Shown piece by piece: positions 79 through 42,731 of a DNA stretch of 64,000 nucleotides (the stretch's first letter is position 1; each line of letters starts with the position of its first letter). The stretch is from assembly GCA_965240325.2 (NCBI GenBank), contig OZ251230.1:248001-312000 (forward strand), read 5' to 3'. Source of the stretch: Rebecca billardiae RCC1528 (Eukaryota; Protista; Haptophyta). The position numbers were made by a program, and so were the translations under genes. The notes under the pieces are model-generated. The model ran no database searches. It saw only the letters and a program-made list of their open reading frames with translations, and was not told the origin of the DNA.

Positions 79-2133
79 ACCCGTCGAAGCGGCCGGCAGA
101 TCAGCCGCCGTCGGAGGAGGTTGCCAAGTACTGGGAGGAGCACGCGATCAGGGTGACGGGCGGCGCGCCCCCGCCGTGGCTCTCCTACTCGCAGGCCGGC
201 CTGCCGCCGCCGCTCCTCCAAGCGTTCACCGCCGCGGGCTTCAGCGCGCCGACGCCGATCCAAGCGCACTCGTGGTCTGCGGCTGCGGACGGGCGCGACG
301 TGATCGCCGTGGCGAAGACGGGCTCGGGCAAGACGCTCGGCTTCCTGGTGCCGTCGATCAAGCTGATGCTCTCGCGCCAGCTCAACACCAGCGTGCCCGC
401 GCTCCTCGTGCTCGCGCCCACGCGCGAGCTCGCCACCCAGATCCAGGAGGAGGCGAACAAGTTTGGGCGCGCGCTCGGCATCGGCTGCTGCTGCATGTAC
501 GGCGGGCAGCCGAAGGGGGCGCAGCTGGGCGAGCTGCGCCGCGGCGCGGGGGTGATGATCGCGACGCCCGGCCGGCTCAACGACTTCCTCGAGGCCGGCC
601 AGGTCTCCCTCCACTCGATCCAGATCCTGACGCTCGACGAGGCCGACCGGATGCTGGACATGGGCTTTGAGCCGCAGATCAGGCGGGTGGTCGCGCAGGT
701 GCCGCCCGCGCGGCAGACGCTCTTCTACACGGCGACGTGGCCGAAGGGCGTGGTGCGGCTCGCGATGGACTTCCTGCGCAACCCCGTGCAGATCAACATC
801 GGCGACACGGACAAGCTGAACGCGAACAAGGACATCACGCAGCACGTGCACACCGTCTCCTCCTCCTTCCAGAAGCAGCCGATCCTCTTCGACATCCTGC
901 GCACCCTCGGGCCGCAGGCGAAGGTGATCATCTTCTGCTCGACCAAGCGGATGTGCGACCAGCTCGGCATGCAGCTCATGCGCCAGTGCAACGCGGGCGT
1001 GCTGCACGGCGACAAGACGCAGGTGCGCTCCGCGCGCGCGCGCGCCGCATGCGCTTGCCTAGCGCGCCGCGCTCACGGCCGCGCCGCCTCGCGCCGCCTC
1101 GCGCCGCCTCGCGCCGCCTCGCGCCGCCCCGCTCGCGCGGCCGCCCGGCGCGCGCGTGCGCGGCCGCGCAGGTGGAGCGCGACCGCACGATGGTCGAGTT
1201 CAAGAACGGCATGCGCCCGGTGCTCTGCGCCACCGACGTCGCCGCGCGCGGCCTCGACGTGAAGGGCGTGAGCGCCGTGATCAACTACGACTTCCCCTCG
1301 TCCACGGAGGACTACATCCACCGCATCGGGCGCACCGGCCGCGCGGGCGCCAAGGGCGAGGCGCACACCTTCTTCGAGCCGAAGGACGCGCGGCACGCGC
1401 GCTCGCTCGTCGAGATCCTCAAGGCGCGCGCGGGCGCGCACCGCGCGCACCGCCGCCGCGCGCACCGCCGCCGCACACACCGCGCGCTCACTCACGCCGC
1501 ACACGCACCGCGCACGGCCGCGCGCGCACCGCTCGCTCGCACGGCGCGCAGGGTGCGGAGCAGCACGTGCCGCCTGAGCTGGCGCAGATGGGGGAGGGCG
1601 GGTTCGGCTCGAGCCTCTCGGCGCTCGGCGCGCGCTTCTCGCAGGGCGGTACGCCCGCCGGCGGCGCTGGCGGCGGGTACGCGGGCGGCGGTGCGTACGG
1701 CGGGTGCGGCGGCGGGTATGGAGGCGGTGGCGCGTACGGCGGCGGTGGCGCCTCCGCCCTGCCCGCGCTGCCCGCGATGCCGGCCGGCGTGGACGGCGCG
1801 GCTCGCCCCGCCGAGCCCGCCGGCGAGTACGCGCGTGAGCGCGAGCGCGAGTACGGCCCGCCACGAGGCCGCGCCGACGAGTACGACCGGCCGGCGCGCC
1901 CGCGCTCGCGCTCGCGAGAGCGCGACTACGACTATGGCGGCGCAGAGAGGCGCGGCGGCGGGTACGGGGAGCGCGAGCGCGACTACGGCCGCGGCCCGCC
2001 GCCGCGCCGTCCCGACGAAGAGTACGACCGGTATCGCGCCCCCCCGCCGCGCCGCAGCCCCGATCGGGGCCCGCCGCCGCGCTCGCCGCCGCCACGCGAC
2101 GCAGACGATCGGTACGATCGCCGCCGCTACTAG
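3..2133 (+). CDS. DEAD-box RNA helicase, DBP2/p68-like, with RS/RD-rich tail; 5' end lies outside the window
   Basis: Motifs [18 protein letters not shown] and [10 protein letters not shown]. Exons <3-1022, 1172-1423, 1552-2133. Introns 1023-1171 (GT-AG) and 1424-1551 (GC-AG) join the three reading frames. Confidence 0.93.
1081..1127 (+). repeat. Intronic 10-nt tandem repeat (GCGCCGCCTC) x4 plus partial
   Basis: Read directly inside helicase intron 1. Confidence 0.9.
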
Positions 2134-2331
2134 TGTCACGAGTGTACTACTCAGTGTCAACGACAACATCATCAAGTGCGGGACGGTGACTCGGACTGGC
2201 GGTGCCGGCCCCGGGGTCTGAAACTATAGCTTACGCACGACGATGATGATGATGCGCGCTGCTGGGCGGTGCTGATCGCAATAGTCTTTATTTAATTGCG
2301 CGCGCCTGCTAGTGCTACTGCGCTATTATTT

Positions 2332-11875: not shown

Positions 11876-12814
11876 TCAGAGACGTTGTACCACTGCACAC
11901 CAGTTGCCGCAATCGTACCACGTTTCCTCGATCTCAACCTCTCCAGAGGCGACGAGAGGGCCGAAAAGCTCTTCCAGCTCGCCCCGGCAGTACACGTGGC
12001 AGTAGCGCTGGAAGACGATCGTGCCCTTTGCGTCGTCGTGGACATCGTGGGCGGGCCATGCGCTGGTGCCGCCGCCCTTGGCGTCGGCAGCGCGCTCGGT
12101 AGCTGCTGGGATGCTGTTGGCGCTGCCGTCATCAGCCACCTGCGCCTTGGGGACGTGGAAGGGCACGAGCACGTCCGGGGCGGAAAAGCGGTGCCCCGAG
12201 TACCCACCGGCCACCGCCGAGGAGGATGCTTGCCCTGCGCCCCCGCCGCCCGCAGCGTCGCTGCCCTCCTGCTCCTGCGCCCACGCGTAGAAGAGTGCGC
12301 GGCCGCCGACGGCGAGGAGGCGGCAGCACTCGGCGCATGCGGCGAGCCTGCGCTCGCGTGTGGAGAGGTGGTGCAGCACGGCGATGCACAGCACGCATTC
12401 AAAGGCGCCCGACCGAAACGGCAGCCTGGTCACGTCGGCGCCGACGACCTGAAAGCCTCGCTCGGCGGCAATCTTGGCGAGCTCCATCGAGATGTCGCTG
12501 GCGATTGGGAAGCTGGGGCCGGGCTCGCTCGAGTCGCCCTGCGCGCCCGTGAACTGGCATGCCGGTAGGTTCTTGCCGTTGCCGGCACCCACGTCCGCGA
12601 TCAGGGAGCCGCGAGGGCGCTCGCGAACAAACGCCTCCACGCGCGGCCACGCCTTGTACCGCGTGCCGTGCCACTTGCGCGCGATGCGGTCGTACACACG
12701 GCGCACGTGCTCGACCTCGATCGAGGGCGTCCCATCCGCCTCGACACGAGCGATAGCCTCCTCGAGCTCACTGCCTGCCAGCGGGTAGGACCTCCGACTG
12801 CCATCCAATGCCAT
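11876..12814 (-). CDS. TRM9: Trm9/ALKBH8-type tRNA wobble-uridine methyltransferase
   Basis: [11 protein letters not shown]...[45 protein letters not shown] and YDCGNWC motifs. Confidence 0.9.
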
Positions 12815-13108
12815 TTGTCCCGCACGGTCACCGACGCCGGGCGGCCATCGTGCTTTTTGCGTGCCCGGCTGCCCGCCGACGCGGCATACATACTGTACAG
12901 TTTACTATGTTTTAACGTGCACACTTGGTTAAGGCGTGATTACTGGTGCAAAGTGCAAACGGCCTGCACCCCGCTCGGTTGTCCAGCGCGCACTGGCACG
13001 GGTTTGCACCGAGCGTTCCCTGCGCACGCGCGCACGCGAAGGCCGAGGGGCGAGAGCCTTGCTGCGCGCCCGCCGCCGCGTCGCGCGCGTCGCGCGCTCC
13101 CGGCCACG

Positions 13109-14020
13109 ATGTCGCTCGAGGCGTCGCTGGAGTACGCGTGCCCAAAGTGCTCGACGCGCATGCGCTCCGTGCCCCCCGGCCCCGCCTTCCGCGCCACCTG
13201 CGTGCGCTGCGCGGCCAAGTTTGTCGTGCGGCTCGCGGCGGCCGCGCCGCCGCCGCCGCCGCCCGCGGCGGCGGCCGCCGCGGGCGCGGGCGCCGGTGCG
13301 GCGCAGCCAGCCGTCGTGGACGACACGGGCGAGGCGGACGCCGCGGACGCGCCGCCGCCCGCGAAGGACGTCTTTGTCGACTACACGCCCACGCTGCCGC
13401 TCGAGGGCGCGCAGCCGCACCCGGGCGACATTGTCGAGTCGAACTCGCTCGCGGCGACGCCGGTGCCGCTCGTGCCGTACGTTCCCGTGTACTGCTGCGA
13501 GGAGAGCATGGCGCCGGTCGTCTCGTCGGGCAAGCTGAGCGCGCTGCAGCTCGAGACCGTCGCGCTGTGCGGCGCGCGGCACGAGCACCTGCTGCCTGAC
13601 GGGCGGCGCGCGGGCTTCTTCCTCGGCGACGGCGCGGGCGTGGGCAAGGGGCGGCAGATCGCCGCGGTGATCGTGGACAACTACGCGCGCGGGCGGCGCA
13701 AGCACGTGTGGTTCTCCACCTCCACCGACCTGCGGCTCGACGCCGAGCGCGACCTGCGCGACATTGGCGCGCCGGGCGTGGCCGTGCACGACGGCTGCCA
13801 GCAGCTCGACCGCGAGACGCGCGGGCTCGGGCTGGGCGCGGCGTTCAGCGAGGGCGTCGTCTTCTCGACGTACGCCTCGCTCGTCAGCGCCGCGCGCCAG
13901 GCGCGCGGCGGCGAGAGCCGGCTGCAGCAGCTCGTGCGCTGGTGCGGCGCGGAGGCGTTCGATGGCTGCGTCGTGTTCGATGAGTGCCACAAGGCGAAGA
14001 ACTTCAAGCAGGCGGCGCAG

Positions 14021-14051
<31 letters not shown>

Positions 14052-17000
14052 CGTCGGAGGTGAGCGCGGCCGACGGCTCCTCCAAGGTCTCCGCCGCGGT
14101 GATCCAGCTGCAGCGCCTGCTGCCGCGCGCGCGCGTGCTGTACGCGTCGGCGACGGGCGTGTCCGAGCCTTCCAACATGGCGTACATGGAGCGGCTCGGG
14201 CTGTGGGGGCCGGGCTCGGCGTTCGGCGGCGAGTTCTCGGCGTTCCTCGAGGCGCTCGAGGCGCGCGGCGTCGGCGCGATGGAGCTGCTCGCGATGGAGA
14301 TGAAGGCGTCCGGCATGTACACCGCGCGCGGCCTCTCCTTCCGCGCCGCCGAGTTTGAGGTGCGCAGCATCCGGCTCAGCGCCGAGCAGCGCGCGGTCTA
14401 CGACGGCGCCGCGGCGTTCTGGCGGCGCGTGCACGCGGAGATCGGCGAGGCGAAGGCGCGGCTCGAGGCGAAGGGCGGCGCGAAGGGGCCCGGCGGCAAG
14501 GGCGGCTCCGACGGCTCGGCGTCCTCCAACTTCTTCAAGCAGCTCTGCGTCGCGTCCAAGGTGCCGCAGGTGGTGGGCCTCGCGCGCGCCGCGCTGCAGC
14601 GGGGCGAGTGCGTCGTGATCGGGCTGCAGATGACGGGCGAGTCGGCGCTGGTGGCCGAGCTCTCGCGCGACCTGCAGCTCGCGCGGCTGCCCTCCTCGTG
14701 CCGCGAGATCCTCCGCCGCCTCATCCTCGAGCGCTTCCCGACCGAGGTGGACGGCGGCGCGCTCGCCAAGAAGCGCGCCGCACTCGACGAGCGCGCGCGC
14801 GCGCTCACCGAGGCGGTGATCAAGGCGCGCGCGGGCGTGGCGGCGCTGCAGGCGGCGGGCGCGGACGCGAGCGGGCCGATGGCCGAGCTGCTCGCGCTCT
14901 CGCGCCGGCACACCGAGACCCGCCTCGAGGCGGACGCGGTGGGCGCGCAGCTGGACGCGGCCGCGCACGGCCCGTGCCACGAGTGCACGACCGCCAAGGC
15001 GCGGCTGCTGCGAGAGCTCGACGAGCTGCCGCTGCCGCCGTGCGCGCTCGACTGGCTGGTGGACGAGCTGGGCGGGCCCGAGGCCGTCGCCGAGATGACC
15101 GGGCGGCGCGGCCGCATGGTGCGCCGCGGCGGCGCGCGCGGCGCCGACGGCGGCGCGGCGGGCGGCGCGCGGTTTGCGTACGCGCTGCGAACGCCCGCGG
15201 ACGCGCTCGGCGGCGGCGGCGGCGGCGGGTGCGCGCCGGGCGGGGACGAGCTGGAGCAGCTCAACGTGCTCGAGCGCAAGGCGTTCTGCGAGGGGCGCAA
15301 GCTCGTCGCCATCATCTCCGACGCGGCCTCCACCGGCATCTCGCTTCACGCGGACGTGCGCACGGCCAACCAGCGGCGGCGCGTGCACATCACGCTCGAG
15401 CTGCCCTGGTCGGCCGACAAGGCGGTGCAGCAGCTGGGGCGGTCGCACCGCTCGAACCAGTCGTCCGCGCCGGTGTACGTGCTCGCGCAGACCGAGCTGG
15501 GTGGCGAGGCGCGCTTCGCCTCCGCGGTCGCCAAGCGCCTCGAGCTGATGGGCGCGCTCACGCGCGGCGACCGGCGCGCGGCGTCGGGCGCCGACCTGCG
15601 CCAATTCAATTACGACACGGCGTGGGGGCGCAAGGCGCTGCAGCAGCTGCTGCACGCGCTGGCGACGGGCGCGATGACGGCCGGGGTGGACTACGCCGCG
15701 CTCGCGCGCGAGCACGCGCGCGCCGAGGCCGAGGCGGCGGGCCTCGACCCCGCCGCCGCGCCGCCTCCCCTCGGCATGGGTGCGCTGCACTGCCGCCTCA
15801 AGGCCGCGGCCGAGCGGATGGGCTTCGCAGACGAGCTCAAGGGCGCGCTCGGCGGGCCCGAGGCGGACGGCGCGCTCGGGCTGGCGCTGGGCGCGCCCGC
15901 GCCCAAGGCGAAGAAGAGCGGCGCCACCGTCAAGAAGTTCCTCAACAAGCTGCTCACGTGCGCGCGCGCGACGGCGCGCACGCGAGCGCGACAGAGGAGC
16001 GCGCCGCGGCCGCGCTCGCGCTCACGCGCGCCGCTCGCGCGCGCGCACACGCGCGGCGCGTGTTCCGGCTGCCTGGCTGCCTTCCAGGCTTGGCGTGAGC
16101 GAGCAGAACCTGCTCTTCTCCGCCTTCCACGCCACGCTCGAGGCGCTGATCAGCGCGGCGGTCAAGGTGCGCGCTGCGCGCCGCCGCGCGTCATAGGCGC
16201 GGCGCCCGCCGCACCCGCCGCGCACTCCGCGCCCCGCGCGCACTCAACCCGCCGCGCGCTCGGCCACGCCCCGCACGCCGCACGCCGCACGCACCGCGCA
16301 GGACGGCAAGTACGACGCGGGCGTGGGTGACGTGGTCGCCACCTCCATCGTGCGCAAGAGCGAGCGCGTCCTGTGGACCGACCCCGCGACGCGCGCGCGC
16401 ACGCGGCTTGTCACGCTCGCGTGCGACCGCGGCGTGGCGTGGGAGGAGGCGGTGGCGCGGTACTCAGCGGCGGTGCAGGGGGCGGCGGGCGCGGAGGGCA
16501 CGGCGGGAGCGGCCGAGGCGGGGGAGGAGGAGGAGGAGGCGGCGGACGGCAGCAGCGGCAGTGAGAGCGGCGGCGAGAGCGAGGAGGAGGCGGAGGAAGA
16601 GGAGGGCGGGGGCGAGAGCGGCGTGTCGGCCGCGGCGGCAGCGCCCGAGGCGGCGGCCGCGCCCGCGGCCGCCGCCGCCGCCGCCGCCGCCGCCACCGCG
16701 CCCGCCGCTGCGCCCGCCGCCGCCGGCCGCGCTGAGCCGCGGCCGCGGCCGCGCCGCGCGCGCCGCCGCCGGCACGACGGCTTCTACGCGTCGATCCGCA
16801 AGTTCCAGGGGCGGCACACGCTGTACGCACTCGCGCTCTCGAGGGCGGAGGAGCCGCGCGCCTTCAGCCTCGTGCGGCCCAACACGGGCGCCGTGCGGCA
16901 CGACGTTGACCTCGAGACGCTGCGCGAGCGGTACGTGCGCGTGTCCGCGCGGCGCGCGCGCGCGGGGTGGGAGGCGCTGCACGCGCTGGCGGACGACGAG

Positions 17001-17786
17001 AGCAGCGGGCTCCCGGCGCGGCGCTTCGAGCTGCTGCTGCTGAGCGGCACACTCACGCCCCTCTGGCCGACGCTGCTCGCCCTGGTGAACGAGCACGCGC
17101 TCAAGCTCACGCGCGCCGAGCAGCGCCTCTCCGTCGTGCGCGTGCAGACCACGGACTGCGCAGAGCGGGTGGTCGGGATCAAGTGGGCGCGCGCGCTGCT
17201 GCCGTACCTGCGCGAGCGGCTCGAGGGGCTCGGCGCGGCGAAGGCGGCGGCCGCGCACGCGGCGGGTGGCGCGAGCGCCACGGGCGAGACGGGCGCGGCC
17301 GACGCCATCGGCGCGCCCATCGAGCGCCGCGCCTTGGAGAAGGTTCTCACCCCCAAGCCCACCATCCTCAGCTTCTTCGCCGCCAAGGGGCAGGGGCAGG
17401 GGCAGCAGCAGCAGCACGGCGGCGGCTCGCAGCCGCACCCGCCCCAGCGGCTCACGCCGCCGCGCGCGCACGGCGGCGGCGGCAGTGGCGGCGCGGAGAG
17501 CGCCATCGAGCTCGACGCCGCCACGCCGCCGCCCGCGCGCGGCCTCGGCGGCAGCTCGGCGGCCAGCCCGCAGCTGGTCGACCTCACTTCGGACGCGCCG
17601 ACCGTGCGCCAGCTCGCTCGCTCCTCCGCGGGCGCGGCCGCCAAGCGGCCGCTCGGCGCCGCCGCGCTCTCGGCGCCGCCGCCAGGCAAGCGGCCGAGCA
17701 AGCAGCCCGCGGCAGGGGGCGGCTCGAAGGGCGCGGCGTCCAAATCGGCCGCCATCTCCAAGTGGTTCCGCCCGAAGGGCTCCTAG
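13109..17786 (+). CDS. SBNO: Strawberry notch family SF2 helicase-like protein
   Basis: [64 protein letters not shown]. Introns 15958-16087 and 16167-16301. Confidence 0.93.
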
Positions 17787-17971: not shown

Positions 17972-20900
17972 CTAGCGCTCGTAGTGGAGCCCCGTGAGCG
18001 ACTTGCGCAGCCCGTTGACCGCGTCGAGCACCTGCCCGAGCGCGAGCGAGTTGACGCGCACCTCGGCGCGCAGGTGGTTGAGCTCGTTGCGGATGGACTC
18101 TGCGTCTTCCGCCGCGCCGCCGCCACCGCCGCCGCCGCCGCCGTCTGCCGCGGCGCGCGGCGGCGCGGGCGGCTCGTGCAGCACGGCGGCGCCGCCGACG
18201 AGCGCGACGACCGCCGCCGCCTCGTCCGCGACGGCGCGCGCGTCGGCGGTGGCGGCCGCGCTCGCCGCCGCCGCGAGCGCCGCCGCCGAGCTGAGCTCGT
18301 GCTGCAGCGAGGCGGAGGAGGACTGCCTCGAGAGCACGCGCGAGCCCGCCACGCCCTCGCCGTCGGTCGCGGGCGGCTGCTGCAGGATGGAGAGCGCCGC
18401 GTGGCCCACGCCCGCCGCGGGCAGCAGCACGCCGAACAGCAGGTGGCGCACGGCGCTCAGGTGCAGGCACGCGTACAGACCGCCAGCGAGCGCGCAGCAC
18501 AGCCGCGCGAGCGAGGCGCGCTCGGCCGCCGCGGCCGCGCCCGCCGCCGCGCCGAAGGCCGAGCTCGCGCCCGCCGCGGCCGAGCGCGCGCGGCCGAGCG
18601 CCGGCCGCGCCGCCGCGGCCGCGCCGCCGCCCTCCAGCCCGGTCGCCGCGCGCGAGAGCGCAGGCTTGGCGGCGGGCGCGCGCGGGCGCACGCTGCTCGG
18701 CCGGTCGCGCAGCATCACGCTGTCCAGCTCGAGCGCGCGCGCGTACGCCTCGAGCGCGTGCTCGCCGAGCACGAGGTCGGCCCTGCTGCGCATCTCCTCG
18801 GGTGGCAGGTACGGGAACGACTGAGGCAGCAGGGGCAGGGGCGGCGTCAGCGGCGGCAGCAGCGGCGCCCGCGGGCACGGCACGGCACGGCGCGGTGAGC
18901 GCGCGCGCGCGCGCGCGCCCGCACCTGCTCGAGGTGGTCCGCGAAGATGAGCGTGAGCTTCTCCCGCCCGATGAAGTGCGCGTGCGTGTACGCCTTGGCG
19001 GGCAGACCCAGCGCGGCGCACGCGCACTCCACCGCCTGGGTGCGCGCAGGCGGCGCGCAGCGGGGAGGCAGCGCGGGGCTGAGCGCCAAGGGAGCGTGCG
19101 TGGCGCGCGCCGGGCCGCGCGCGGTGCCCGCGCACGCACCCACTCGTCCGCGGCGAGCGAGCGGTGCACGAAGGCGAGCGTGACGAAGCGGTCGAGCTGC
19201 GACAGCTCGCTGAGCGCGGTGCCGTCCGCGCCGATCGCGGCCGACGCCTCGCGGCCGCGCGCCGGCAGCCCCGCGCGCGGCGCGCCGTCGGCGTGCGCGC
19301 CAGGCTCGTCGGCGGCGCCGGGCTCGACACAGACGGCGCCGGGCTCGACCAGCCGCAGCAGCCGCTTCGCGCGCGGCAGGCTCTCGTCCACCCAGCTCGA
19401 GATGACTTCGCGCACGTGCGCCGCCGTCGCCTCCCTCTCGAGAGCGCGCGCGGCCGCGGCCGCGGGCGCGTCCGCCTCCGGCTCGGCGGCGGCGGCGGCG
19501 GGCGGCGCGGCGGCTGCGGCGGCGCCGTCTGTGTCCGAGGCGGGCGCGGAGGCGCGCGCGTGCGCGGGCGCGTGCGCGTGCGCGTGCGCGTGCGCGGCTG
19601 GCGGCTCGACGGCTTGCCTGATCATCTCGAGCAGCTGCGCGCCCTCCGGCTGCGCCGGCCGCGCGCCGCCGAGCGCCGAGCCACGGCGCGACGCGGCCGC
19701 GGCGGCGAGCGCGGCCGCCTCCGCGTCCGCGTCGGCGTCTTCGGCGTGTCCGCTGTGCGCGGCCGCTGCTGCGCGCGCGCGCTGCGCGTGCAGCTCGTCC
19801 GCGCCGTGGCCCGCCGCCTTCGCCGCGGCGGCGGCCGCCGCCTTCGCCGCGGCGCGGCGCGCGCCGTCCTTCGCGCCCGCCTCCGCCGTCTTGCGCAGCC
19901 AGCGGAACACCGCCACCGCGTCCGCGTCGCCGTGCCGCTTGTCCGGGTGCCACTCGAGGTAGAGGCGCTTGAGGGCGCGCGCCTGCTCCGCCTCGTCGGG
20001 CAGCTCCCACACCGCGTCGAGCTGCTGGCGCACGGCCGCGCACTTCTGCCGCGCGGAGGGCGTGAGGTCCGCCTCGTCCACGCCCTCGTACCCGTGCACC
20101 ACGACGGACGCGCCCTCGCCCGCGCCGCCGCCGCCCGCCGCGGCCGCACCGTCGGCGGGCGCGGCCGCGCGCGGCGGCGAGCGCTTGGGCGCGTCCGACG
20201 CGCGCCGCGAGCGCTCCGACTCGGCCTCGACGCCGTCGGGCGGCGCGGGCATGCCGAGCACCGAGGGCACGACGAAGCCCTTCTGCCGCAGGATCGCCTC
20301 GCGCGCCGCGTCGTCGCGCATCAGCATCGCGCGCCCGACGAAGTCCTCGAAGTCGCCCGCGCGCTCGAGGTCGCCCAGCAGCGTGCGCGCGAGCGCGCGC
20401 GGCACCTCGAGCGCGGCGAGCGCGCCGCCGCCGCGCCCGACGTAGAGCAGCCCGCGCGGCGCGTCCCAGAACGCGCCCACCTCGCGGCTCGAGACGATCG
20501 GCTCCGCCGCGCCGCCGCCGCCCGCGCCGCCGCCGCCGCCGCGCGCCGCCGCGCGCGCGATCGTGTGCGTCACGCTCACGCGCGCGGCCGTCACCTCCTT
20601 GGTGCGGAAGAGGAGCCGCATCGTGCCGGCCGCGCACAGCCGCTCAAAGTCGGGGCGGAGGCGGTTGGCGAGGAAGGTGGCGATGCAGCGCTTCGTGCCC
20701 GGCGTGAGCAGCTCCGCCTCGCCCTCGCCCTCGCCCTCGCCCTCCGCCGCGGGCGCACCCGCCGCGTCGGCCGCCGCGTCGCGCGGCAGCGCCGCGCCGC
20801 CGCGCAGCACGCCCTCGGCGCGCACGGCGCACTGCGCGCGCGCGCCCACGCCGCGCACGCCGAGCGCGGCGCCGAGCTGGAGGTACGGCGCGGCGGAGCC

Positions 20901-23900
20901 GTCGCCCTCGCGCGGCGCCCAGACGAAGGGCAGCGTCGCCCCCTCGCCCTCCTCGCCCGCCTCGCCGCCCTCGCCCTCGCCCTCGCCCCCGCCGCCCCCC
21001 TCGAACGCGCCCCTCAGCTCGGAGTCGTCCGGCAGCAGCGCCTCTGCGGGCGGCACGAGCGCCATGGCGTGCGTGAGCGCCCACCCCTTCTCGCACAGCC
21101 GCGCCCAGAGCTCGGCGGGCATCGCGCGCTCGCGCTCGCGCCCGCGCTTCGCCGTGTGCGTCGCGAGCCGCGCCCACAGCGCGCGCAGCACGGGCGGCGC
21201 GGGCGGGCGCTCCGCCGCGTCCGCGTTTGACAGCGCCAGCCAGCGGTGCGCGTAGTCCGAGTCGTCCGCGTGCGGCCGCGCGCCCAGCTTCTCGACGAGG
21301 TAGTGGCGCAGCCCCTCGGGGTACTCGAGCGAGAGGATGTGCAGCTGGCCCAGGAAGATCTCGCGCTCCGCCGCCCACACGCACTCCTTCGCGCGCACCC
21401 AGCGCGGGCGCGGCGTGCGCACGAGCAGCGTCGCGCTCCCCTCCCACTCCGCCAGCTCGGCGCTCGCGGCCGCGCGCGCGCCGCCCGCGCCCACGCCCGC
21501 CGAGGCGGCCGCGAGCGCGGTGAAGAGCTTGAGGACGAGCGCGGGCTCGACGTCGTCCGCCGGCTGCGCCGCCAGCCGGCGCACGTGCGCCACCAGCGCG
21601 CCCGCGCTCGCGTCCGTCGGCAGCCCCAGGAACGCCGCGACGCGCGGCCGCAGCTGCAGCGTGCAGTACGGCAGGCCGGCCCCAAACACGTCGCGCAGCG
21701 CCGCAGAGTCTGCGAACAGCTGCGAGGGCGCGCGCGCGCCGGCGGAGGAGGGCAGCCACGGCGCGGAGAGCAGCAGCCGCTTGAGCTCCGACGGGCGCCG
21801 CGTCACGTGCAGCAGCGCGCGCGCGCCGCCGCCCGCGCCGCGCGCCGCGCGCGCGGGCGAGGCGAGGGCCGCGTGCGCCGAGGGCGCGCGGTGCACGCGC
21901 GCCTCCTCCCAGCCCATCCGGCCGGACGACAGCAGCGCGTCCAGCCACTCGGCGAGGAGCGCGGCCTGCTCGGCGCTGACGGGAGCGCCGCCCGCCACCG
22001 CGCCCGCCTCGGCGCCCGCCACCGCGCCGCCCTCGCCCTCGGCCGCGGCCGCGCGCCGCAGCAGCGCGAGCGCGGGGAACTCAATGTCAGGCGCGCCCGG
22101 CCCGCCCGCGCCCGCGGTGGAGACGGCGGCGGGCGTGATGAGCGGCAGGTCGAGCGCGCCGAGGCAGAGCGCGGCGAAGCCCGCGCCGCCCGCCTCCGCC
22201 CCCGCCCCCGCGCCGCCCTCCGACCCCGCCGCGGGCACGACCGCGCCGCCGTTCGGAGCGCCGCCGGGCGCGCCCGCGCCGCCGCCGGGCGCGGGCGGCT
22301 GCGGCGGCGCGGGCGCGAGCTCGGCATACTCGGGCGCGAGGACGGCGAAGTGGAGGTCGTCCTCGCCCGGCGCGAGCAGCCGCGCCCACGCCGACTTGGC
22401 GCGCGGCACGAGCACCTGCGCGTCCACGTCCACGTCGCCGCGCCGCACCACCAGCCCGCCCTCCAGCGCCAGAGGCATGAGCGGGCCGACCGCGCGCACG
22501 CACCTGTCGTCGATGGCGCCGCGCGCGCGCAGCTCGCGCACGCCGCGCGCGAGCTGAAGCGCGGCGCGCGCGGCGGAGGCGTGCTCGGCGCGCAGCTCGG
22601 CCGCGCCGAGCGCGGGCGCCGCGCCCTTCGCGCCGCCGCCGCTGCCGCCGCCGCCGAGCTGCGCGCGCGCGCTCGCGGGCAGCGCGGGCCGCGCGCCGGC
22701 CGCGCCGTCGCCGCTGCCGGGCGCGCAGCCGTTGTGGGCGCAGCCGTTGTTGACGCAGCCGTTGGCGGTGCCGTTGGCGGGGCCGTTCTCGTCGTTGGCG
22801 AGGGCGGCGGGCCCGCGCGGCGCGCCGGGGACGTGCGCGTCGGGCGGCAGCGGCGGCACGTGGAACGAGCGCACCGCGTGCTCCACGAACGCCGCGACCG
22901 AGAGCGGGCGCAGCCCCAGCGCCTCCTGCGCCCACAGCAGTACGCCGGGCGCGTGCGTGTCGATGGCGGCGTGCACCGAGCGGCACATCAGCTGCAGCGG
23001 CTGCGGCGCGTGCGCGGCGGCGCCGTCGGCGGCGCGCGGGAGGAGGAGCGAGGCCACGTCCTCGGGCAGCGTCTGCGTCGACGCGGCGAACACCGGCCGC
23101 TCCACCGTCGCCGCGCACATGCGCGTGCCCTCCGTGCGCTGCGCGAGCCGCGCGCTCGCGGCCGCGGCCGCGGCCGCGGCGCGCGCGCGCGCGCTGCCGC
23201 CCGCCGCGCCGCCGCCGCCGCCCGCGCCGACGGCGGCGGCGCGCGGCGCGCTGTGCTCGACGCGGAGCAGGGGCAGCCCCTTGAGCGCGGCGGGCGTCGC
23301 CCACGCCTCCGCCGCGAGCAGCGCGTACAGCTCCACCAGCTGCGCCGCGCTCAGCGAGCCCAGCCAGTCCGCGTCCCCCAGGATGGCCCCCCAGTCGGCC
23401 GCGGAGAGCGGCCGCGCGCCGAGCGCGTCCAGCTGCGCGTGGTACAGCGCGGCGACGTCGGCGTGGACGAGAGCGACGGGCGCGGGCTCGGGCGGCGGCG
23501 CGCCCGCCGCCGCGTCGTCGCCCGCGCCGCGCGACACGTGCGCCGGCCACGCCGCGCAGCGCGCGAGCAGCGCGAGCAGCGCCGCGGGCGCGACGCGCGC
23601 GTGCGCCGGCAGCACGAGCTCGGCCGCGCACCCGCCCGCGCCCGGCGTGGCGGCTGCGGCTGCGGCTGCGGCCGAGGGCGGGCGCGGGCGCGGCGCGACG
23701 AGGACGCACGCCGCGCCGGCGAGCTCGGCGAGCGCGCGCGTGCGCAGCTCCGCGAAGAACGTGCTCGACGTCAGCGGCACGAAGCCGTACGCGTCGACCG
23801 CGTGCGCGCGCTGCCCCAGGCAGCTCAGAAACGCGCGCACAAACGCCGACGCGAGGCACTCGCGCAGCCACAGGTTCCACGGGCGGTGGAGCTGGATGGA

Positions 23901-24974
23901 CTCGCGCGAGGAGGAGAGCACGAAGTCGGCGTTGAGCAGGAACGGCACGCGCGAGTGCACCTCCGTCGGCAGGAACGCGAACACGCGCCCCGAGCAGTGC
24001 AGCGCGCCGAGCGCGCCGTCGTCGCCGTCGTCCGCCGAGCGCAGCGGCAGCGCGACCGCGCACGCGCGCGCGTCCACGCCCGCACGGCTCGGCTCGACGA
24101 CGTCGGCGGGCACGGCGGCCTCGTGCGCGGCGAGCCAGTAGTCTCGGCGGCGCTCCTCCCCGCCCGCCCGCGTGATCAGCGAGACCACGTGCCCGCCGTC
24201 GCCGCCGTCGGCCGCCGCGCCGCCGGCCGTGGGCTGCGGGTGCGCGGCCGAGACGACACGCGTCACCTGCGCCGTCACGTGCCCGCCCACGACGACGCGG
24301 AGCTGCGCGATCTTGTGGAGGAAGAGGAGGGTCTCGGGCGCGATGGAGGCGAGCTCGCGCTCCACCTTGTCCCGCTTCCCCGCCTTGAGCGGCAGCAGGA
24401 TCACCGTGTGGCTCACCTCGATGTGCGGCCGCACCGCCTCGGGCACGGCGTGCACCAGCGAGGGCACAATGTACCCCAGCCCCGTGCACTCGTCGGGCTC
24501 CTCGTTGAAGGAGAAGTGGAAGCCGTTGGAGAAGATGGCGGGGCGGGCGGAGACGACGAACACCGACTTGAAGCCGATGCCCTTGTCGCCGATGAACGCA
24601 CCCGACGACTTGCGCGCCTTCTTGGTCGACGCGCCGACCGCGCACAGCGCGCGCACGTCCGCCGGCCGGAAGCCGCGCTCGTTGTTCGAGATGAGGAGCG
24701 CGCCGTCGGCGCCGGGCGTGTGGAGCGGGTCGGTCTCGAGCAGCTCCATCGACAGCGTGGGCGTGGTGCCCTCGTCGTACGCGTTGTCCTCCGCATTCTG
24801 GATGAGCTCGAGCACAAAGTGCGTCTCTGTCGAGTAGAGCCCCTCGGAGAGGTGGAGCACCGAGGCCTGCAGGTCGTCGATCAGCGGGTTGCGCGCGTTG
24901 GACTCGCCCTCGCGGTCCAGCCAGAACTTCTCGCGCCGGATCTGCTCGATCACCCCCCGCCCGTAGTCGCTCAT
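17972..24974 (-). CDS. Giant NO VEIN/sacsin-type GHKL ATPase with J-like motif and C-terminal RNase III-like domain
   Basis: HFVLELIQNAEDN, NNERGF, IGDKGIGFKSVF, FLPT..., NADFVLSSSRE; LYLEWHPDK near 19945. Introns 19139-19036 and 18924-18821 link to the frame ending at 17972. Confidence 0.88.
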
Positions 24975-26703: not shown

Positions 26704-27804
26704 CTAGAAGAGCTTGAGGATGAGCTTGCCCGTGTTGGTGCCGTCGAAGAGGCGGTTCAGCGCGGGCAGGTAGTTCTCGATCCCCTCCTGGATGTCCTCC
26801 TTGTACTTGAGCCTGCCCTGGGCGATCAGCGCGCCCAGCTTGGCCTGCACGGCGGGCAGCTGCTCGGCGTGGTCGGTGCAGATGAAGCCCTTGAGCTGCA
26901 CGCGGCGGTGGAGCAGCATGTCGTACGACGCGAGGCCGAGCTCGCCCGAGTTGTACCCCGAGATCACGCCGCACAGCGCGAGCCGCATCCCGTTGTTCGC
27001 CACCTGCAGCACCGCCTCTGTCGTGACGCCGCCGGTGTTGTCAAAGTAGCCGTCCACGCCGCGCGGCGCGGCCGCGCGCAGGTCTGCGATCAGCTGCTCG
27101 CGCCCAACCTTGTAGTTGAGGGCGGCGTCGAAGCCGAGCTCGGTGGTCAGCCATTCCGCCTTCTCCGCCGTGCCCACCACGCCGATCACGCGCGCGCCCT
27201 TGAGCTTGGCGAGCTGGCCGGCGAGCGAGCCCACCGCCCCCGCGCCCGCCGAGACGACGACCGTGTCGCCCTCGGCGACCTCGAGCAGGTCGACGCCCAC
27301 CGAGGCGGTGAGGCCGATGACGAGGGAGAGGGCGGAGAGGTACGCGGTGACGGGCACGCTCGCGGTCGCCTCGGGCGGCAGCACGGCCGCCCCCTCCGCG
27401 CGCGAGGTGAGGTAGTAGTCCTGCACGCCGCCCACGCCGACCACGTGCGCGCCCACGGGCACGTCCTTGTCCTTCGAGGCCTCGACGACGCCGACGGTGA
27501 TCGCGCGCATCGGCTCGCCGAGCTCAACCGGCCCCCAGTACTGCGGTGCGTCGCCCATCCAGATCCGGTGCGTCGGGTCGAGCGAGGCGTACCGGTTGCG
27601 CACGAGCAGCTTGCCCTCCGCAACCGCCGGCTTCTCCCGCTCGACGAGCTCGAGGTTGGCGTCGGTGATCTCGGCGTCCGGCCGGCTGCGGAGGACGATG
27701 GCACGATTCACCGTCGGACACGAGCCGTCGCCCGCCGACGCCGACGCGCCGACTCGCAGCACGGCGGCGCACAGGAGCGCGAGCGATCGCGTGTGAGCCG
27801 ACAT
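26704..27804 (-). CDS. NADP-dependent alkenal/enone double-bond reductase (PTGR1/CurA-like MDR) with N-terminal signal peptide
   Basis: YASLDP..RIWM, VVVSAGAGAVGSLAGQLAK, GVDGYFDNTGG, LCGVISGYN, LFDGTNTGKL; MSAHTRSLALLCAAVL leader. Confidence 0.9.
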   Translation of the reverse strand: MSAHTRSLALLCAAVLRVGASASAGDGSCPTVNRAIVLRSRPDAEITDANLELVEREKPAVAEGKLLVRNRYASLDPTHRIWMGDAPQYWGPVELGEPMRAITVGVVEASKDKDVPVGAHVVGVGGVQDYYLTSRAEGAAVLPPEATASVPVTAYLSALSLVIGLTASVGVDLLEVAEGDTVVVSAGAGAVGSLAGQLAKLKGARVIGVVGTAEKAEWLTTELGFDAALNYKVGREQLIADLRAAAPRGVDGYFDNTGGVTTEAVLQVANNGMRLALCGVISGYNSGELGLASYDMLLHRRVQLKGFICTDHAEQLPAVQAKLGALIAQGRLKYKEDIQEGIENYLPALNRLFDGTNTGKLILKLF

Positions 27805-27937
27805 CGTGTTTGCCGCCGTTGACCGCCGTGACCGGCCGTGCGTGCGCAGGGCGCCGGCGTCGGAAATCATTTTACGCGGATATCGAGTCGTATCGCGCCA
27901 ATTCGTTATCATCTGCATGCAGATTCTTATTCGCGCG

Positions 27938-30045
27938 TCACCGCGGCGGAGTCCGGTTTGCGTTCGCACGGCGCGCGACGTGCTCGAGCAGCTCGGCCTC
28001 GGGGATCCAGTGGCCGTGGAAGCCGAAGGGCACGCGGACGCCGTCGGCGGCGAGCCTCGCGACTTCTGGGAGCGCACCGTCGCGCACCTCGCCGTCCAAC
28101 ACGACAAGCGCCGAGGCGTTCGCGCGCATGTCGTGCACCCACGAGAGCACCCACACGGCATCGGAGTCGGCCGCGCGGCCGGCCTCGGGGCGCTTGGGGC
28201 AGAGCACCGGCTCGCCTCCCGCCTCGCCGCCGCCATACGTGGTGGCTGAGACCAGCCGGCCGCCACCGGGCACGATCTCCCACTTGGCCACGCCGGTGAA
28301 GAGCGCGTCCCTGCCGCTCATGATCGCCGAGAAGCCCCACCTGTTGCCAGCACGGGTGGCGCGCGCGCGCGGTGGCGTGTCAGCGCGGCCGGCGCGGCGC
28401 ATGCGCTGGGCGCCGGCGGCACCAGCGCGCGGGCGCGCACCGCGCGTAGTGCCCGGCGTAGGCGGGGTGCACGCGCGGGAACTCAACGTTGAGCAGCCCG
28501 TCGGCCGCGCTCGCCTCGGGCTGGACGCGTCGCACCGTCGCCGTGCCGGCCGCCACATCCATCTCAACCTCGGACATTTCCCAGAAGTTCTTCATCCTCC
28601 TCTTCTGCTCAGAGTCCGGATCGCGCTCCGCCTCGCTCGGCGGTGAGCCTGGAGCGGGCATGCCGGGCTGGCTTTCCGCCGGGTCGTCGTCCGGCATGGC
28701 GTCGAGCGTGCCGTCAAAATCGCGCGCCACGGGCAGCCACAGGAACACCCTGCCCGCCTGCTCGGGCACATCCTCCGCGCCATCCCACGCGTTCAGCACG
28801 TGCACGAACGAGAGGGCCTCCCGTGCGCGCACCCAAGCGACGGCCGCGCCCGTAGTGGCGTTGCCGCCGCCGAGCGCGCTGCGCGGCACCAGGCCAAACA
28901 GCGCGCGGTGCTCGTCGCTGTGCGAGAAGACGCTGCCCGCGACGATGCCCTCCGGGGTGAAACGGATCGAGGGCACGAGCAGCACGAGCCGCGTGCGCGT
29001 GATCGCCATGTCGTGCGCGAACGCCGCGCTGCCACCACCCTCGAGCTCGGGCACAAACTCGAAGGTGGCTGAGGGCAGCTCGACCGGCCGCGCGCCGCTG
29101 CCGCCCGCAGCGCCTCCGGTCGCCGCCTCCGACCGGAGCGCGCCGTACATGAGCGGCGGCAGGTCGGGGCTGAACGAGTAGCCGTGCAGCAGCACCTCGC
29201 CGCTCTCGCCGTCCACCTTCGGGTGCGCCGACACGGGGTACCCCAGCCGCCCGCCAAAGTCGACGAAACCGAGCGACTCGACGGCGCCGCCCTCTGCCGA
29301 GAGCGCGAGCTCAAACGGCAGGCTGCCCTCGTGCAGCGCAAACACGCGGCCGCCCCACGAGCTGACGGCGGTGTTCGCCTGGCCGACGGTGAGCGGGGTG
29401 AGCCCGGCCAGCCTGGGCTTGGGCGAGATGAGCAGCACCTTGAGCAGGCCGACCACGCCGCTCAGCTCGCCGATGCCCCCGAAGAAGTCGCGGCCGAGCT
29501 GCCGCTCGAGCAGGTAGCGCGGCGTGCGCAGCCACGCGTTGGAGTACGCGGCGGTACGCTCGGAGCCGTGGAGGCGGACGGCGTGGACCATTCCGTGACC
29601 TGTGCGCACCGCGCCGTCGCGAGCACCGGAGGGGGCGCGGGGGGGGGGGGGGGGGGGGGGAGCAGAGAGTCGGACCGCGTGGGGTGCGAGCATCCCGCGC
29701 CGCGCGGTACCGCGCACCGTCAAACCAGTGCGCGCGCTTGGTGAAGCCATGCCCGACGATCGGGTTTGGGCCCGTGCGCAGGAACACGCCGCGTAGAGTG
29801 TCAGGCACGGCGCCGTGCCGCACGACCAGCGGCACCGCGGAGAGCTCGGCAGACACCGGCGCGTAGTTGCCAAGCAAGTAGCGGTTGCGCACGTTGAAGC
29901 TGCGCCCGTCCTGGAGCCAGTCAAGCGCGCGGTCGACCGCGTCATTGAGTGGCAGGCACAGCATGACCAGCACGGCCGCAGCCGCTACGAGCAGCGCAGG
30001 GCAAGCCGCCACCACCCCGCGCCATGCCCAGCGCTTCAGGCCCAT
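27938..30045 (-). CDS. Carotenoid cleavage dioxygenase (RPE65/CCD family) with N-terminal hydrophobic anchor
   Basis: GNYAPV, RTGPNP, spliced HWFDGHGMVH, SAHPKVD, AHDMAIT, FVHVLNAW, EFPRV, GGEPV, PFGFHG: four Fe-ligand His present. Introns 29717-29600 and 28440-28341. Confidence 0.92.
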
Positions 30046-33515: not shown

Positions 33516-35397
33516 ATGCGCTCGGCGGTGCTTGCGCGCATCGCGAGGGCCTCCGCCCCGCCGCTGCCCCCGGCGCTTGCCCGCGGCGCCCGTGCAGCGA
33601 GCACGGCAGCGACGGCGACTTCCCAGGAGGTCGACTGGACCGCCCTCCGCCCGAGCGTGCACGCGCCACCGTCGGCGCCCGACGCGGGCGCGAGCTCGGA
33701 TCGTTCGCTCCACGCGGGGAACATGTCGCAGAAGCTACGCGCGATGGAGTACGCCGTGCGCGGGGTGGTGCCGAAGCGCGCCGAGGAGCTCGAGGCGAAG
33801 CTGCGCGCCGGCGAGACCCTGCCCTTCTCCGAGATCACGTACGCGCACAACGGCAACCCGCACAAGGTGGGCCAGCCGCCCATCACCTTCTTCCGGCAGG
33901 TGCTGGCGCTGTGCGACCTGCCGCCCGAGTACGGCATCGAGCACCCGATGGCGACGTCGATCTTCGCGCCCGACGCCATCGCGCGCGCCAAGGAGATCCA
34001 CGCCAGCATCGGCGACGGCGGCACGGGCGCGTACACGCACTCGCAGGGCGTGCCCGCGTTCCGGCAGGACGTGGCCGACTTTGTGACGGCGCGCGACGGG
34101 CACAAGGCGGACCCGGACGCCTTCTACCTGACGAGCGGCGCGAGCTCGGCGATCCACATGCTGCTCACCGCCGTGGTCAACCACCCGGACGATGCGGTCC
34201 TCATCCCGATCCCCCAGTACCCGCTGTACTCTGCGACGCTCGCGCTGCTCGGCGCGCACCAGGCGGGCTACCACCTCGACGAGTCGGCGGACTGGTCGGT
34301 CACGGCGGAGCGGCTGGAGCGCGCGCTGGACGAGTCGCGCGCGCGGGGCCACAACCCGCGCGCGTGCGTGATCATCAACCCGGGCAACCCCACCGGCGAG
34401 GTCTTCAGCCGCGGCGTGCTGCAGGACGTGATCCGCGTGTGCGTGCGGCACAAGCTGCTGCTGCTCGCAGACGAAGTCTACCAGGAAAATGTGTACGCGG
34501 GGGAGGGCTTCGTCTCGGCGCGGCAGGCGGCGCTGGACATGGGGCCCGAGGCGGCCTCGCTCGAGCTCGTCTCGTTCCACTCGACGAGCAAGGGCTTCGT
34601 CGGCGAGTGCGGCCGACGCGGCGGTTACATGGAGCTCCACAACATTGTACGACACGCGGCGCGCACGGGAGGAGCGCCCGCTGTGGCGCCTCCGCTTGCC
34701 TCGCGCACGCGCGGGCTCACGCGCGGGCTCGCGCCCCCCCGCCGCCCCGCGCCGCCCCGCGCCGCCCGCCCCCTCCCTGCCCCGCAGGACCCGTACGTGC
34801 AGTCGCAGCTCTTCAAGCTCGCCTCGTCCAAGCTGTGCTCGGGTGTGCCGGGCCAGGCGATGACTTCGCTCATGGTGCGGCCGCCGCAGAAGGGCGACCC
34901 GTCGTACGAGCTGTACGCCGCGGAGGTGGGCACGATCCTGGAGGGCCTCGCGGCCAAGGCCAAGCTGCTCGTCGACGGCCTCAACTCCATCGACGGCTTC
35001 TCGTGCAGGGAGGCGAAGGGCGCCATGTACGCGTTCCCCTCGGTGGAGCTGCCCGCGCGCGCGTGGAGCGCGGCCGAGGAGCAGGGCGTGAGCGTGGACG
35101 TGCTGTACGCGCTCTCGCTGCTCGAGACGACGGGCGTGTGCGTCGTGCCCGCCTCGGGCTTCGGGCAGGTGCGCGCCGCGCGCGCCGCGTCTCCGCCGCG
35201 CGCGCGCGCACGCCCGGCCGAGCCCGCCAGCGCATGCTCCTTGACGTCGCCCCACTTGGCGCCCGTGCGCACGCTCGCAGGCGGATGGGCGTGTCGGCTT
35301 CCGAACCACCTTCCTGCCCTCGGCGGGGGCGCTCGAGACCGCGGTCGAGCAATTCCGGCGGCACCACGAGCACTTCTGCAGGGAGTACGCGGACTGA
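33516..35397 (+). CDS. Alanine aminotransferase / glutamate:glyoxylate aminotransferase, probably organelle-targeted
   Basis: EYAVRG, GAYTHSQG, PIPQYPLYSA, INPGNPTG, ADEVYQENVY, SFHSTSKG..GECGRRGGY. Introns 34647-34787 and 35169-35280. Confidence 0.94.
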
Positions 35398-35864
35398 GGC
35401 GCGCGCGCAGATGGCGCTCGGATCAGCGCCATCGCGCTATTCGAGCGCTGAATCATCAGCCACTAATATTGCCAACGCCAACGGACGACATCGGTTGGTG
35501 CCCTGAAATTCGGCATTCCAGGGGCGTTCCCCGCACCGGTCATACGCCAAATCGAACCGCGTTCAGACTATTGAAATATATATGGCGGGCGGCTTCCTCT
35601 AGATCGGTAACTAGCGCGCGGGTAAGACTAAGACTAGTAAGAGCCAGAGGGTTCATCCGTGAGACTGATCGGATACCGCCGCGGCATTATATTCGCCACC
35701 GCGGTGGCGGCGCGCGCGCGTCGACGCCAGACGGTGCGTCGAGCTTCCGCTCGGCGATGGAGTGATGGGCGACTACGAGGGGGGGGGGGACGACGGCGAG
35801 GAGCGCTGATCCTGGTGTTTGTCTCTGCTGCTCGATCTACAGCTTGCTGACTCTGACGCCTGCC

Positions 35865-42379: not shown

Positions 42380-42731
42380 CTTGGGCAGCGGCTGCTGGCG
42401 AACATTGACTGTGAATGTTCTCCGCCCCGCGCGTGGACCTGGAGCAGTGGAGCGTGGGAAGACCGCGTCAAATGACGGACCGCCTCACGGACGCCATTAT
42501 TCTGCTGTGGAGTCGATCGCAGCTGCCGACCGGAGTGCCGGCGGACGGCGACCAGTCCAGGGCGGGAGCTTCAACCGCGCAGGCGGCCCGGCTACGAACA
42601 GCCCCCGGCCGAGCAGCGTGAGCTCTCGCGGCTCCTCCTTCCGGGGTGGGCCCTCGAGCGCGGCGAGCCCAGGCTGCTCGTCGCCCGGCGGAGCGGCGGC
42701 GGCCTTGTGGGCCAAGCAGACGGCTCCGGCG

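Follow-up and report, generated by a model that had tools for sequence, protein, structure and literature searches.

A Tiamat/NO VEIN/sacsin-type ATPase gene of Rebecca billardiae with a J domain and a probable degenerate RNase III-like domain at its C-terminus

We describe here a single gene in a 64,000-nucleotide (nt) stretch of the genome of the haptophyte Rebecca billardiae (OZ251230.1, positions 248,001 to 312,000), hereafter called the window, in whose coordinates all positions are given. The gene lies on the minus strand. Judged by its reading frames and its relatives, it is a real, spliced gene, and its predicted protein of about 2260 residues belongs to the Tiamat / NO VEIN / sacsin clade of GHL (Hsp90-like) ATPases. 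The reading that we consider probable is that the NOV_C nuclease of such ATPases has been replaced in this protein by a J domain and a dead RNase III-like domain, the latter likely acting as a C-terminal dimeriser. The features on which the following sections rely are these:

17972..24974, minus strand: whole gene, with three exons, two introns and the stop codon TAG at 17974-17972
19140..24974, minus strand: exon 1, 1945 codons, 42% identical over its length to its relative P0002
23748..24956, minus strand: N-terminal GHL (Hsp90-like) ATPase of the Tiamat/NO VEIN/sacsin type, residues ~7-409, with ExxxNAxD and GxxGxG-type motifs
20262..21800, minus strand: Tiamat-type core, residues ~1059-1571, colinear with bacterial proteins up to the start of the nuclease
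19800..20030, minus strand: J domain with HPD motif, residues ~1649-1725, located by phmmer against PDB sequences
18398..19214, minus strand: putative RNase III-like pseudo-enzyme domain, extending from the end of exon 1 through exon 2 into the first part of exon 3, and interrupted by both introns and a low-complexity insert
19036..19139, minus strand: intron 1, 104 nt, GT-AG; an 81-nt intron lies at the same position in the relative
18925..19035, minus strand: exon 2, 111 nt, 37 codons, putative degenerate RNase III signature helix as aligned to E. coli RNase III by hhalign
18821..18924, minus strand: intron 2, 104 nt, GT-AG; at the same position, 65 nt in the relative and 318 nt in a third species
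17972..18820, minus strand: exon 3, 282 codons plus stop; its profile recovers P0121 and P0123
18524..18694, minus strand: Ala/Gly/Arg-rich low-complexity insert of 57 residues, in the loop matching E. coli RNase III 92-111; absent from the relative
17975..18100, minus strand: conserved C-terminal helix, ending ...LHYER; the protein of the third species ends ...LHYERS

The family of the protein is evident from its N-terminus. The Pfam model SACS matches residues 47-150 (E 9e-9, 35.9 bits against a gathering cut-off of 32.8), and the PADLOC models for Tiamat (TmtA) match the first 400 residues with an E value of 4.8e-85. The N-terminal ATPase is 47-50% identical to bacterial Tiamat-type proteins and 37% identical to plant NO VEIN. 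A search with residues 1-240 as the query returned 1259 homologues; among the best matches listed, most were bacterial proteins that combine the ATPase with NOV_C (formerly DUF3883), at 51-58% identity, and plant NO VEIN-like proteins were found there too. A first-pass annotation of this DNA, made from its letters, had proposed a NO VEIN/sacsin ATPase, and the SACS match, the TmtA match and the 1259 homologues bear this out. The SACS/TmtA match is a single one, restricted to the N-terminus, and the three repeated ATPase (SRR) modules of sacsin were not seen.

The resemblance to the bacterial proteins extends well beyond the ATPase. BLASTP against two of them, P0004 and P0008, gave three colinear blocks at residues 9-405, 1059-1321 and 1424-1571; the two core blocks correspond to residues 809-1053 and 1111-1240 of P0004/P0008, with E values of 1e-11 to 1e-19 for P0004. 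The large core that follows the ATPase (the DUF3684 region) is thus present by BLASTP, while the Pfam family DUF3684 itself was unreported. Colinearity stops at bacterial residue 1240, about 150 residues ahead of the NOV_C nuclease, which occupies residues 1394-1492 in P0004. In the R. billardiae protein, Pfam gave no NOV_C match at E values up to 1; P0004 and P0008 score 57.7 and 47.4 bits with the same family. By Pfam, therefore, the domain that the first-pass annotation named as the usual end of NOV proteins is absent from this one.

Downstream of the core, the protein matches five solved J domains at E values of 3e-6 to 9e-6 over about 46-70 residues (phmmer against PDB sequences). The best of these is the J domain of sacsin (1iur, E 3.4e-6), with RLYL-WHPDK aligned; E. 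coli DnaJ matches at 4.3e-6. The Pfam DnaJ model remains below its cut-off of 27.8, scoring 13.6 bits with this protein and 23.7 with the relative. The HPD motif that had been called sacsin-like in the first-pass annotation sits in this full-length match, and from these alignments we conclude that it is part of a real, divergent, sacsin-like J domain, more than a motif. Because the best solved match is the J domain of sacsin and not a generic DnaJ, this finding suggests that the pairing of ATPase and J domain is older than animals.

The remainder of the protein depends on the splice model. The G+C content of the region is about 80%, which opens long frames in all reading frames, so a lone open reading frame (ORF) says little here. 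The main frame of the minus strand is open from the ATG at 24974 to 17925, and its translation is protein-like up to ...FVHRSLAADEW and Arg/Ala-rich beyond that point. The DNA at the boundary of exon 1 and intron 1 reads TGG/GTGCGT; an AG lies 104 nt further on, followed by 111 nt that are protein-like in a second frame. Exon 2 then ends at CAG/GTGCGG, and after an intron of 104 nt with CAG at its end a third frame runs to the TAG. Intron 1 has its GT at 19139-19138 and its AG at 19037-19036; those of intron 2 are at 18924-18923 and 18822-18821. The two 104-nt introns that had been proposed earlier (19139-19036 and 18924-18821) are therefore exact in their coordinates and GT-AG ends and are supported by intron positions in other species, and their removal yields the C-terminal peptide that was quoted with them. 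The overlapping alternative ORFs, in the other frames and on the other strand, showed no family match. The two introns are equal in length and both start with GTGCG; neither is a copy of the other, and the equality may be chance.

The support from other species comes from two relatives. The closest relative of exon 1 is P0002, which is encoded on an 8-kb assembly contig (L001) and shows 42% identity overall and 72% at the N-terminus. At the site of intron 1, this contig has a GT...CAG segment of 81 nt, then an exon of 111 nt, then a GT...CAG segment of 65 nt and then a homologue of exon 3; a second contig (L098) spans the same region. When a profile of exon 3 was searched against 1.8 billion representative proteins, the only genuine matches were P0121, which is the exon 3 of this relative, and P0123, which comes from a third species. 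Another match, P0122, was rejected as a bacterial repeat protein with one short motif in common. On the contig of the third species (L096), exon 2 is exactly 111 nt long (84-194), the second intron measures 318 nt and the start of exon 3 is in register. This intron (195-512) is in frame and stop-free, so that a prokaryote-style gene caller reads through it. The middle exon has the same length of 111 nt in all three species. Protein identity between species is 35-57% for exon 2 and 43% for exon 3, and the introns have only their GC-rich composition and GT...CAG ends in common. Neither the end of exon 1 nor exon 3 gave any match in word searches, and a scan of metagenome contigs with the exon 3 profile found no relative. 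Because the intron positions, the 111-nt exon and the exon sequences are shared across species and the introns have diverged, we regard the three-exon splice model as real and, at the level of comparison between species, as established.

The C-terminal domain that the splicing assembles resembles the catalytic domain of RNase III. For this comparison, in which the exons were compared singly throughout, the reference was a domain alignment and hidden Markov model (HMM) built from 14 sequences, namely E. coli Rnc and 13 diverse bacterial rnc genes found in plasmid or chromid records; near-identical enterobacterial relatives of Rnc were set aside as useless for a profile. With alignments of two species, hhalign placed three pieces of the domain on E. 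coli RNase III as follows:

Exon 2: residues 37-58, the signature helix, score 22.5, P 5e-4
Start of exon 3: residues 60-91, score 19.3, P 3.5e-3
Later part of exon 3: residues 112-142, score 21.1, P 1.9e-3

When the third species was added, their positions shifted little or not at all (exon 2 on 40-58 and the start of exon 3 on 60-90), with scores of 18.6, 18.5 and 19.7. Exon 2 ends on residue 58 of E. coli RNase III, and exon 3 has its second residue on position 60; the match is ungapped across 58/59, which means that the splice junction falls inside one alignment. HMMER, applied piecewise, put the end of exon 1 on profile positions 16-28, exon 2 on 32-54, the start of exon 3 on 67-92 and its later part on 110-134, and pieces of the relative on 36-56 and 107-140.

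Controls were made for these scores. None of the 100 column shuffles per piece reached the observed value in the two-species alignments (maximum 17.7); with three species, the score of 18.5 for the start of exon 3 was exceeded once, by a shuffle at 18.7. Against the RNase III profile, 96 real stretches of exon 1, each aligned from two species, scored 9.9 on average and 14.5 at most, and the three pieces themselves reached maxima of 14.1, 16.7 and 12.3 against 21 unrelated 14-sequence profiles. A protein language-model search pointed in the same direction. With the compact exon 3 of the relative, RNase III clusters (PF14622/PF00636) came first, at 0.92 and 0.91, and the RNase III family made up 10 of the 10 best family-bearing matches; exon 3 from the window, with its long low-complexity insert, gave the same families more weakly (0.84). 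From these comparisons we are fairly confident that the C-terminal domain is homologous to the RNase III catalytic domain, that is, that a divergent all-helical domain of this kinship takes the place of NOV_C after the J domain. No double-stranded-RNA-binding domain (dsRBD) was matched on this protein by Pfam, and the protein ends with a low-complexity stretch and the conserved ...LHYER helix.

A number of results weigh against this assignment. Pfam on single exons, at E values up to 1, found no C-terminal domain family, and the RNase III threshold (PF00636 / PF14622) was not reached; on the stop-free read-through of exon 2, intron and exon 3 in the third species, it found nothing at E values up to 10. 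Searches of the single exons against PDB sequences with phmmer and hmmsearch gave chance matches only and no RNase III. The exons were not ranked when the RNase III HMM was scanned over the unsplit six-frame ORF pieces of the window, and the piecewise HMM scores are low (0.2 to 4.2 bits), lying in the top ~0.2-2.6% of 40-residue six-frame windows, of which unrelated ones reach 6 bits. Because no single piece outscores 40-residue windows elsewhere, the case rests on the joint colinear pattern. AlphaFold predicted low-confidence helices both for exon 3 of the relative alone (pLDDT 58.8) and for exon 2, the in-frame intron and exon 3 of the third species (pLDDT 50.8), so that the region is all-helical at the level of a low-confidence prediction; Foldseek on the exon 3 model of the relative returned generic helical bundles and no RNase III match. 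Furthermore, the domain was found in only three species among the 1.8 billion representative proteins, and the alignments are shallow for that reason. The comparison with HEPN domains was by Pfam and PDB-sequence searches. The claim of a hidden RNase III domain in the first-pass annotation thus stands in part: specific colinear hhalign matches and the agreement of the language model speak for it, but on its fold there are low-confidence models of fragments, and the one compared by Foldseek had no RNase III match. That the domain is split over frames and hidden from annotation did hold, as it extends over three exons and Pfam is blind to it.

If the domain is related to RNase III, its catalytic residues have largely gone. 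D45 and E117 are essential to catalysis by E. coli RNase III. The residues at these and four other acidic positions, read from the hhalign alignments in E. coli RNase III numbering, are as follows:

E38: T in this window, H in the relative, T in the third species
E41: H in this window, E in the relative, Q in the third species
D45: R in this window, R in the relative, R in the third species
E65: P in this window
D114: R in this window, R in the relative, L in the third species
E117: C in this window, E in the relative, D in the third species

All six acidic positions checked are lost in the copy of this window, in line with the earlier reading that EFLGD had become HFIGR and DAFE had become RLCC (E41 to H, D45 to R, D114 to R and E117 to C). 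D45 and D114 are lost in all three species, with 'GR' conserved where the signature has 'GD'. Because both metal-binding aspartates are missing from every species in which the domain was found, the domain is very probably catalytically dead and unable to cut RNA by the RNase III mechanism.

Four other explanations were weighed. The region after the J domain might be a lineage-specific helical domain unrelated to RNase III, its resemblance being a chance or convergent pattern of amphipathic helices. The failure of Pfam and HMMER searches to find RNase III, the low-confidence helical bundles obtained from the fragments, none with an RNase III match, and the fact that each lone piece is within reach of noise in the HMM test are what this explanation would predict. 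It leaves aside, however, that three pieces fall on correct, colinear and abutting RNase III positions, with scores that shuffles, real windows of the same protein and unrelated profiles do not reach (one three-species shuffle excepted), and that an independent language-model search puts RNase III families first; we therefore consider it unlikely. A diverged HEPN domain, which would make the protein a plain single-module sacsin orthologue, is a much weaker candidate. It would fit a J domain that is nearest to that of sacsin, where the J domain precedes HEPN, and both HEPN and RNase III folds are all-helical. Against it, no exon gave a Pfam HEPN match (a dedicated HEPN profile was not run), no sacsin HEPN chain was among the PDB matches at E values up to 10, no conserved Rx4-6H motif common to the alignments of the three species was seen, and the pieces match RNase III specifically. 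We judge it very improbable.

The remaining two explanations concern the gene model and the loss of activity, and both seem to us barely credible. Given that open frames are common in every frame at 80% GC, the C-terminal exons could be unused or belong to a decaying pseudogene, with the protein ending soon after the J domain. Such exons would hardly be expected to keep their intron positions, the 111-nt middle exon and a conserved protein in three species, between introns that diverge in both length and sequence, nor would the frame of exon 3 be expected to stay open to the conserved ...LHYER end. Likewise, the domain could be an active ribonuclease that works through other residues, such as the Glu that the relative keeps at positions 41 and 117; yet all three species have Arg in place of D45, D114 has become Arg in this window and the relative and Leu in the third species, and the copy in this window has none of the six acidic residues. 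A Tiamat/NO VEIN/sacsin ATPase that ends in a J domain and a dead RNase III-like domain thus remains our preferred reading.

How such a protein might work can be outlined from what its parts do elsewhere. GHL ATPases act as dimeric clamps, the N-terminus of which is closed by ATP and the C-terminus of which is held together. Because RNase III domains are obligate dimers, the dead domain would most likely be the C-terminal dimerisation module of this clamp, and it may still dock on double-stranded RNA (dsRNA). The J domain would recruit Hsp70 to the cargo of the clamp. In a 2026 preprint, Tiamat is predicted to dimerise through its ATPase and its nuclease, with the nuclease replacing a dedicated dimerisation domain, and HEPN RNases are stated to require dimerisation. 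Judged by its sequence, the R. billardiae protein may serve in defence, in RNA quality control or in protein folding alike. The first-pass annotation had suggested chaperone-like action, binding of dsRNA and pairing with Dicer or RNase III, all of which are conceivable roles. One tentative scenario, to which we give only a modest chance, is that a eukaryotic descendant of the antiviral Tiamat has been redirected towards RNA: its dead RNase III dimer would sense dsRNA, such as that of viruses, the GHL clamp would close on this RNA with ATP, and Hsp70, brought in by the J domain, would then remodel the complex or dispose of it. Should this scenario be true, sacsin, with its J domain and HEPN domain, would exemplify a broader design not seen before, consisting of a GHL clamp, a J domain and a dimeric RNase-fold sensor, and a testable handle on the role of the enigmatic C-terminus of sacsin would be at hand.

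The surroundings of the gene were also surveyed. A gene for a helicase of the Strawberry-notch (SBNO) type (12668-17786, plus strand) is convergent with it, the two 3' ends lying about 190 nt apart; its Pfam matches are AAA_34 (E 9e-112) and Helicase_C_4 (E 6e-77), and the ORF that follows carries an SBNO alpha/beta domain. An immunity-type pair arranged head-to-head lies about 16 kb from the Tiamat-like gene; in this pair, a protein with WWE and Deltex C-terminal domains (41000-42379, minus strand; Pfam) faces a large protein with a TIR_2 domain (42213-46325, plus strand; Pfam, E 1.9e-17); this closeness may or may not be meaningful. The genes at 26707-29945 (minus), 33516-35762 (plus), 46580-49252 (minus), 53191-54909 (plus) and 737-2218 (plus) are ordinary eukaryotic genes by Pfam, and the ordinary genes of the window encode a zinc-type oxidoreductase, an RPE65/carotenoid oxygenase, a class I/II aminotransferase, a protein with MFS and alpha/beta hydrolase domains, an ABC transporter ATPase and a Helicase_C protein. 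An Rfam scan across the window found no family at threshold.

Compared with class 1 RNase III (E. coli Rnc), the putative C-terminal domain has colinear helices over residues 37 to 142, including the signature Gly and the FP motif. It differs in that it has no dsRBD, its acidic residues are replaced, a 57-residue insert occupies the loop 92-111 and its similarity is too low for Pfam. Inactive RNase III-like domains kept as dimerisation or RNA-binding scaffolds are familiar from mitoribosomal mL44/mL57, plant RNC1 and KREPB4/5 of the trypanosome editosome. These proteins are small or bear a dsRNA-binding domain, and we know of none in which a GHL ATPase or a J domain is attached.

With the Tiamat (TmtA) antiphage protein and plant NO VEIN, the gene shares a colinear N-terminal ATPase and core; unlike them, it has no NOV_C of the PD-(D/E)xK type and carries the J domain and the RNase III-like domain instead. 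According to the 2026 preprint, other effectors often stand in for the C-terminal nuclease in Tiamat-like proteins, and by its domain order the gene is, we conclude, a further C-terminal swap of this kind. The first-pass annotation had not recognised the architecture. This holds in so far as the combination of J and RNase III-like domains is not among types I-XI as the accessible text of the preprint describes them, and neither DnaJ nor RNase III is mentioned in its main text; on the other hand, the gene belongs to a known pattern of nuclease swapping. Each element was familiar before, be it the ATPase family, the swapping of nucleases, the J domain or the dead RNase III domain, and it is their combination that is new to the described types, so that the gene would add an effector type to the Tiamat-like swaps. 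It also illustrates how, in very GC-rich genomes, a domain that is both divergent and split goes unseen by standard annotation.

The closest parallel in overall design is sacsin. In the preprint, sacsin-type proteins are the form with three ATPase modules, a J domain and HEPN, classed as Tiamat-like 'Type XI-A', and according to a survey of HEPN domains, that of sacsin is an RNase or RNA-binding domain and is not active in humans. Both proteins have a sacsin-type Hsp90-like ATPase, a J domain near the C-terminus and then an all-helical, dimeric RNase-fold domain, as far as the present one can be predicted; the best solved match of the J domain here is that of sacsin, and the terminal domain of sacsin is likewise catalytically degenerate in humans. 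The differences are that this gene has one ATPase module against three in sacsin, that ubiquitin-like and XPCB domains were not detected in it, that its terminal domain appears RNase III-like and not HEPN, and that its ATPase resembles those of bacterial Tiamat and plant NO VEIN more closely than would be expected of a sacsin orthologue. The combination of an Hsp90-like ATPase, a J domain and a degenerate RNase fold (HEPN) in sacsin has no agreed explanation. Here, in a distant single-module relative from the same ATPase clade, a sacsin-like J domain precedes what appears to be another degenerate RNase fold, that of RNase III. HEPN and RNase III are both dimeric folds and both known binders of RNA, and the presence of two unrelated RNase folds at the same position, if the assignment of the present one is right, argues for a need to dimerise, and perhaps to bind RNA, rather than for nuclease activity.

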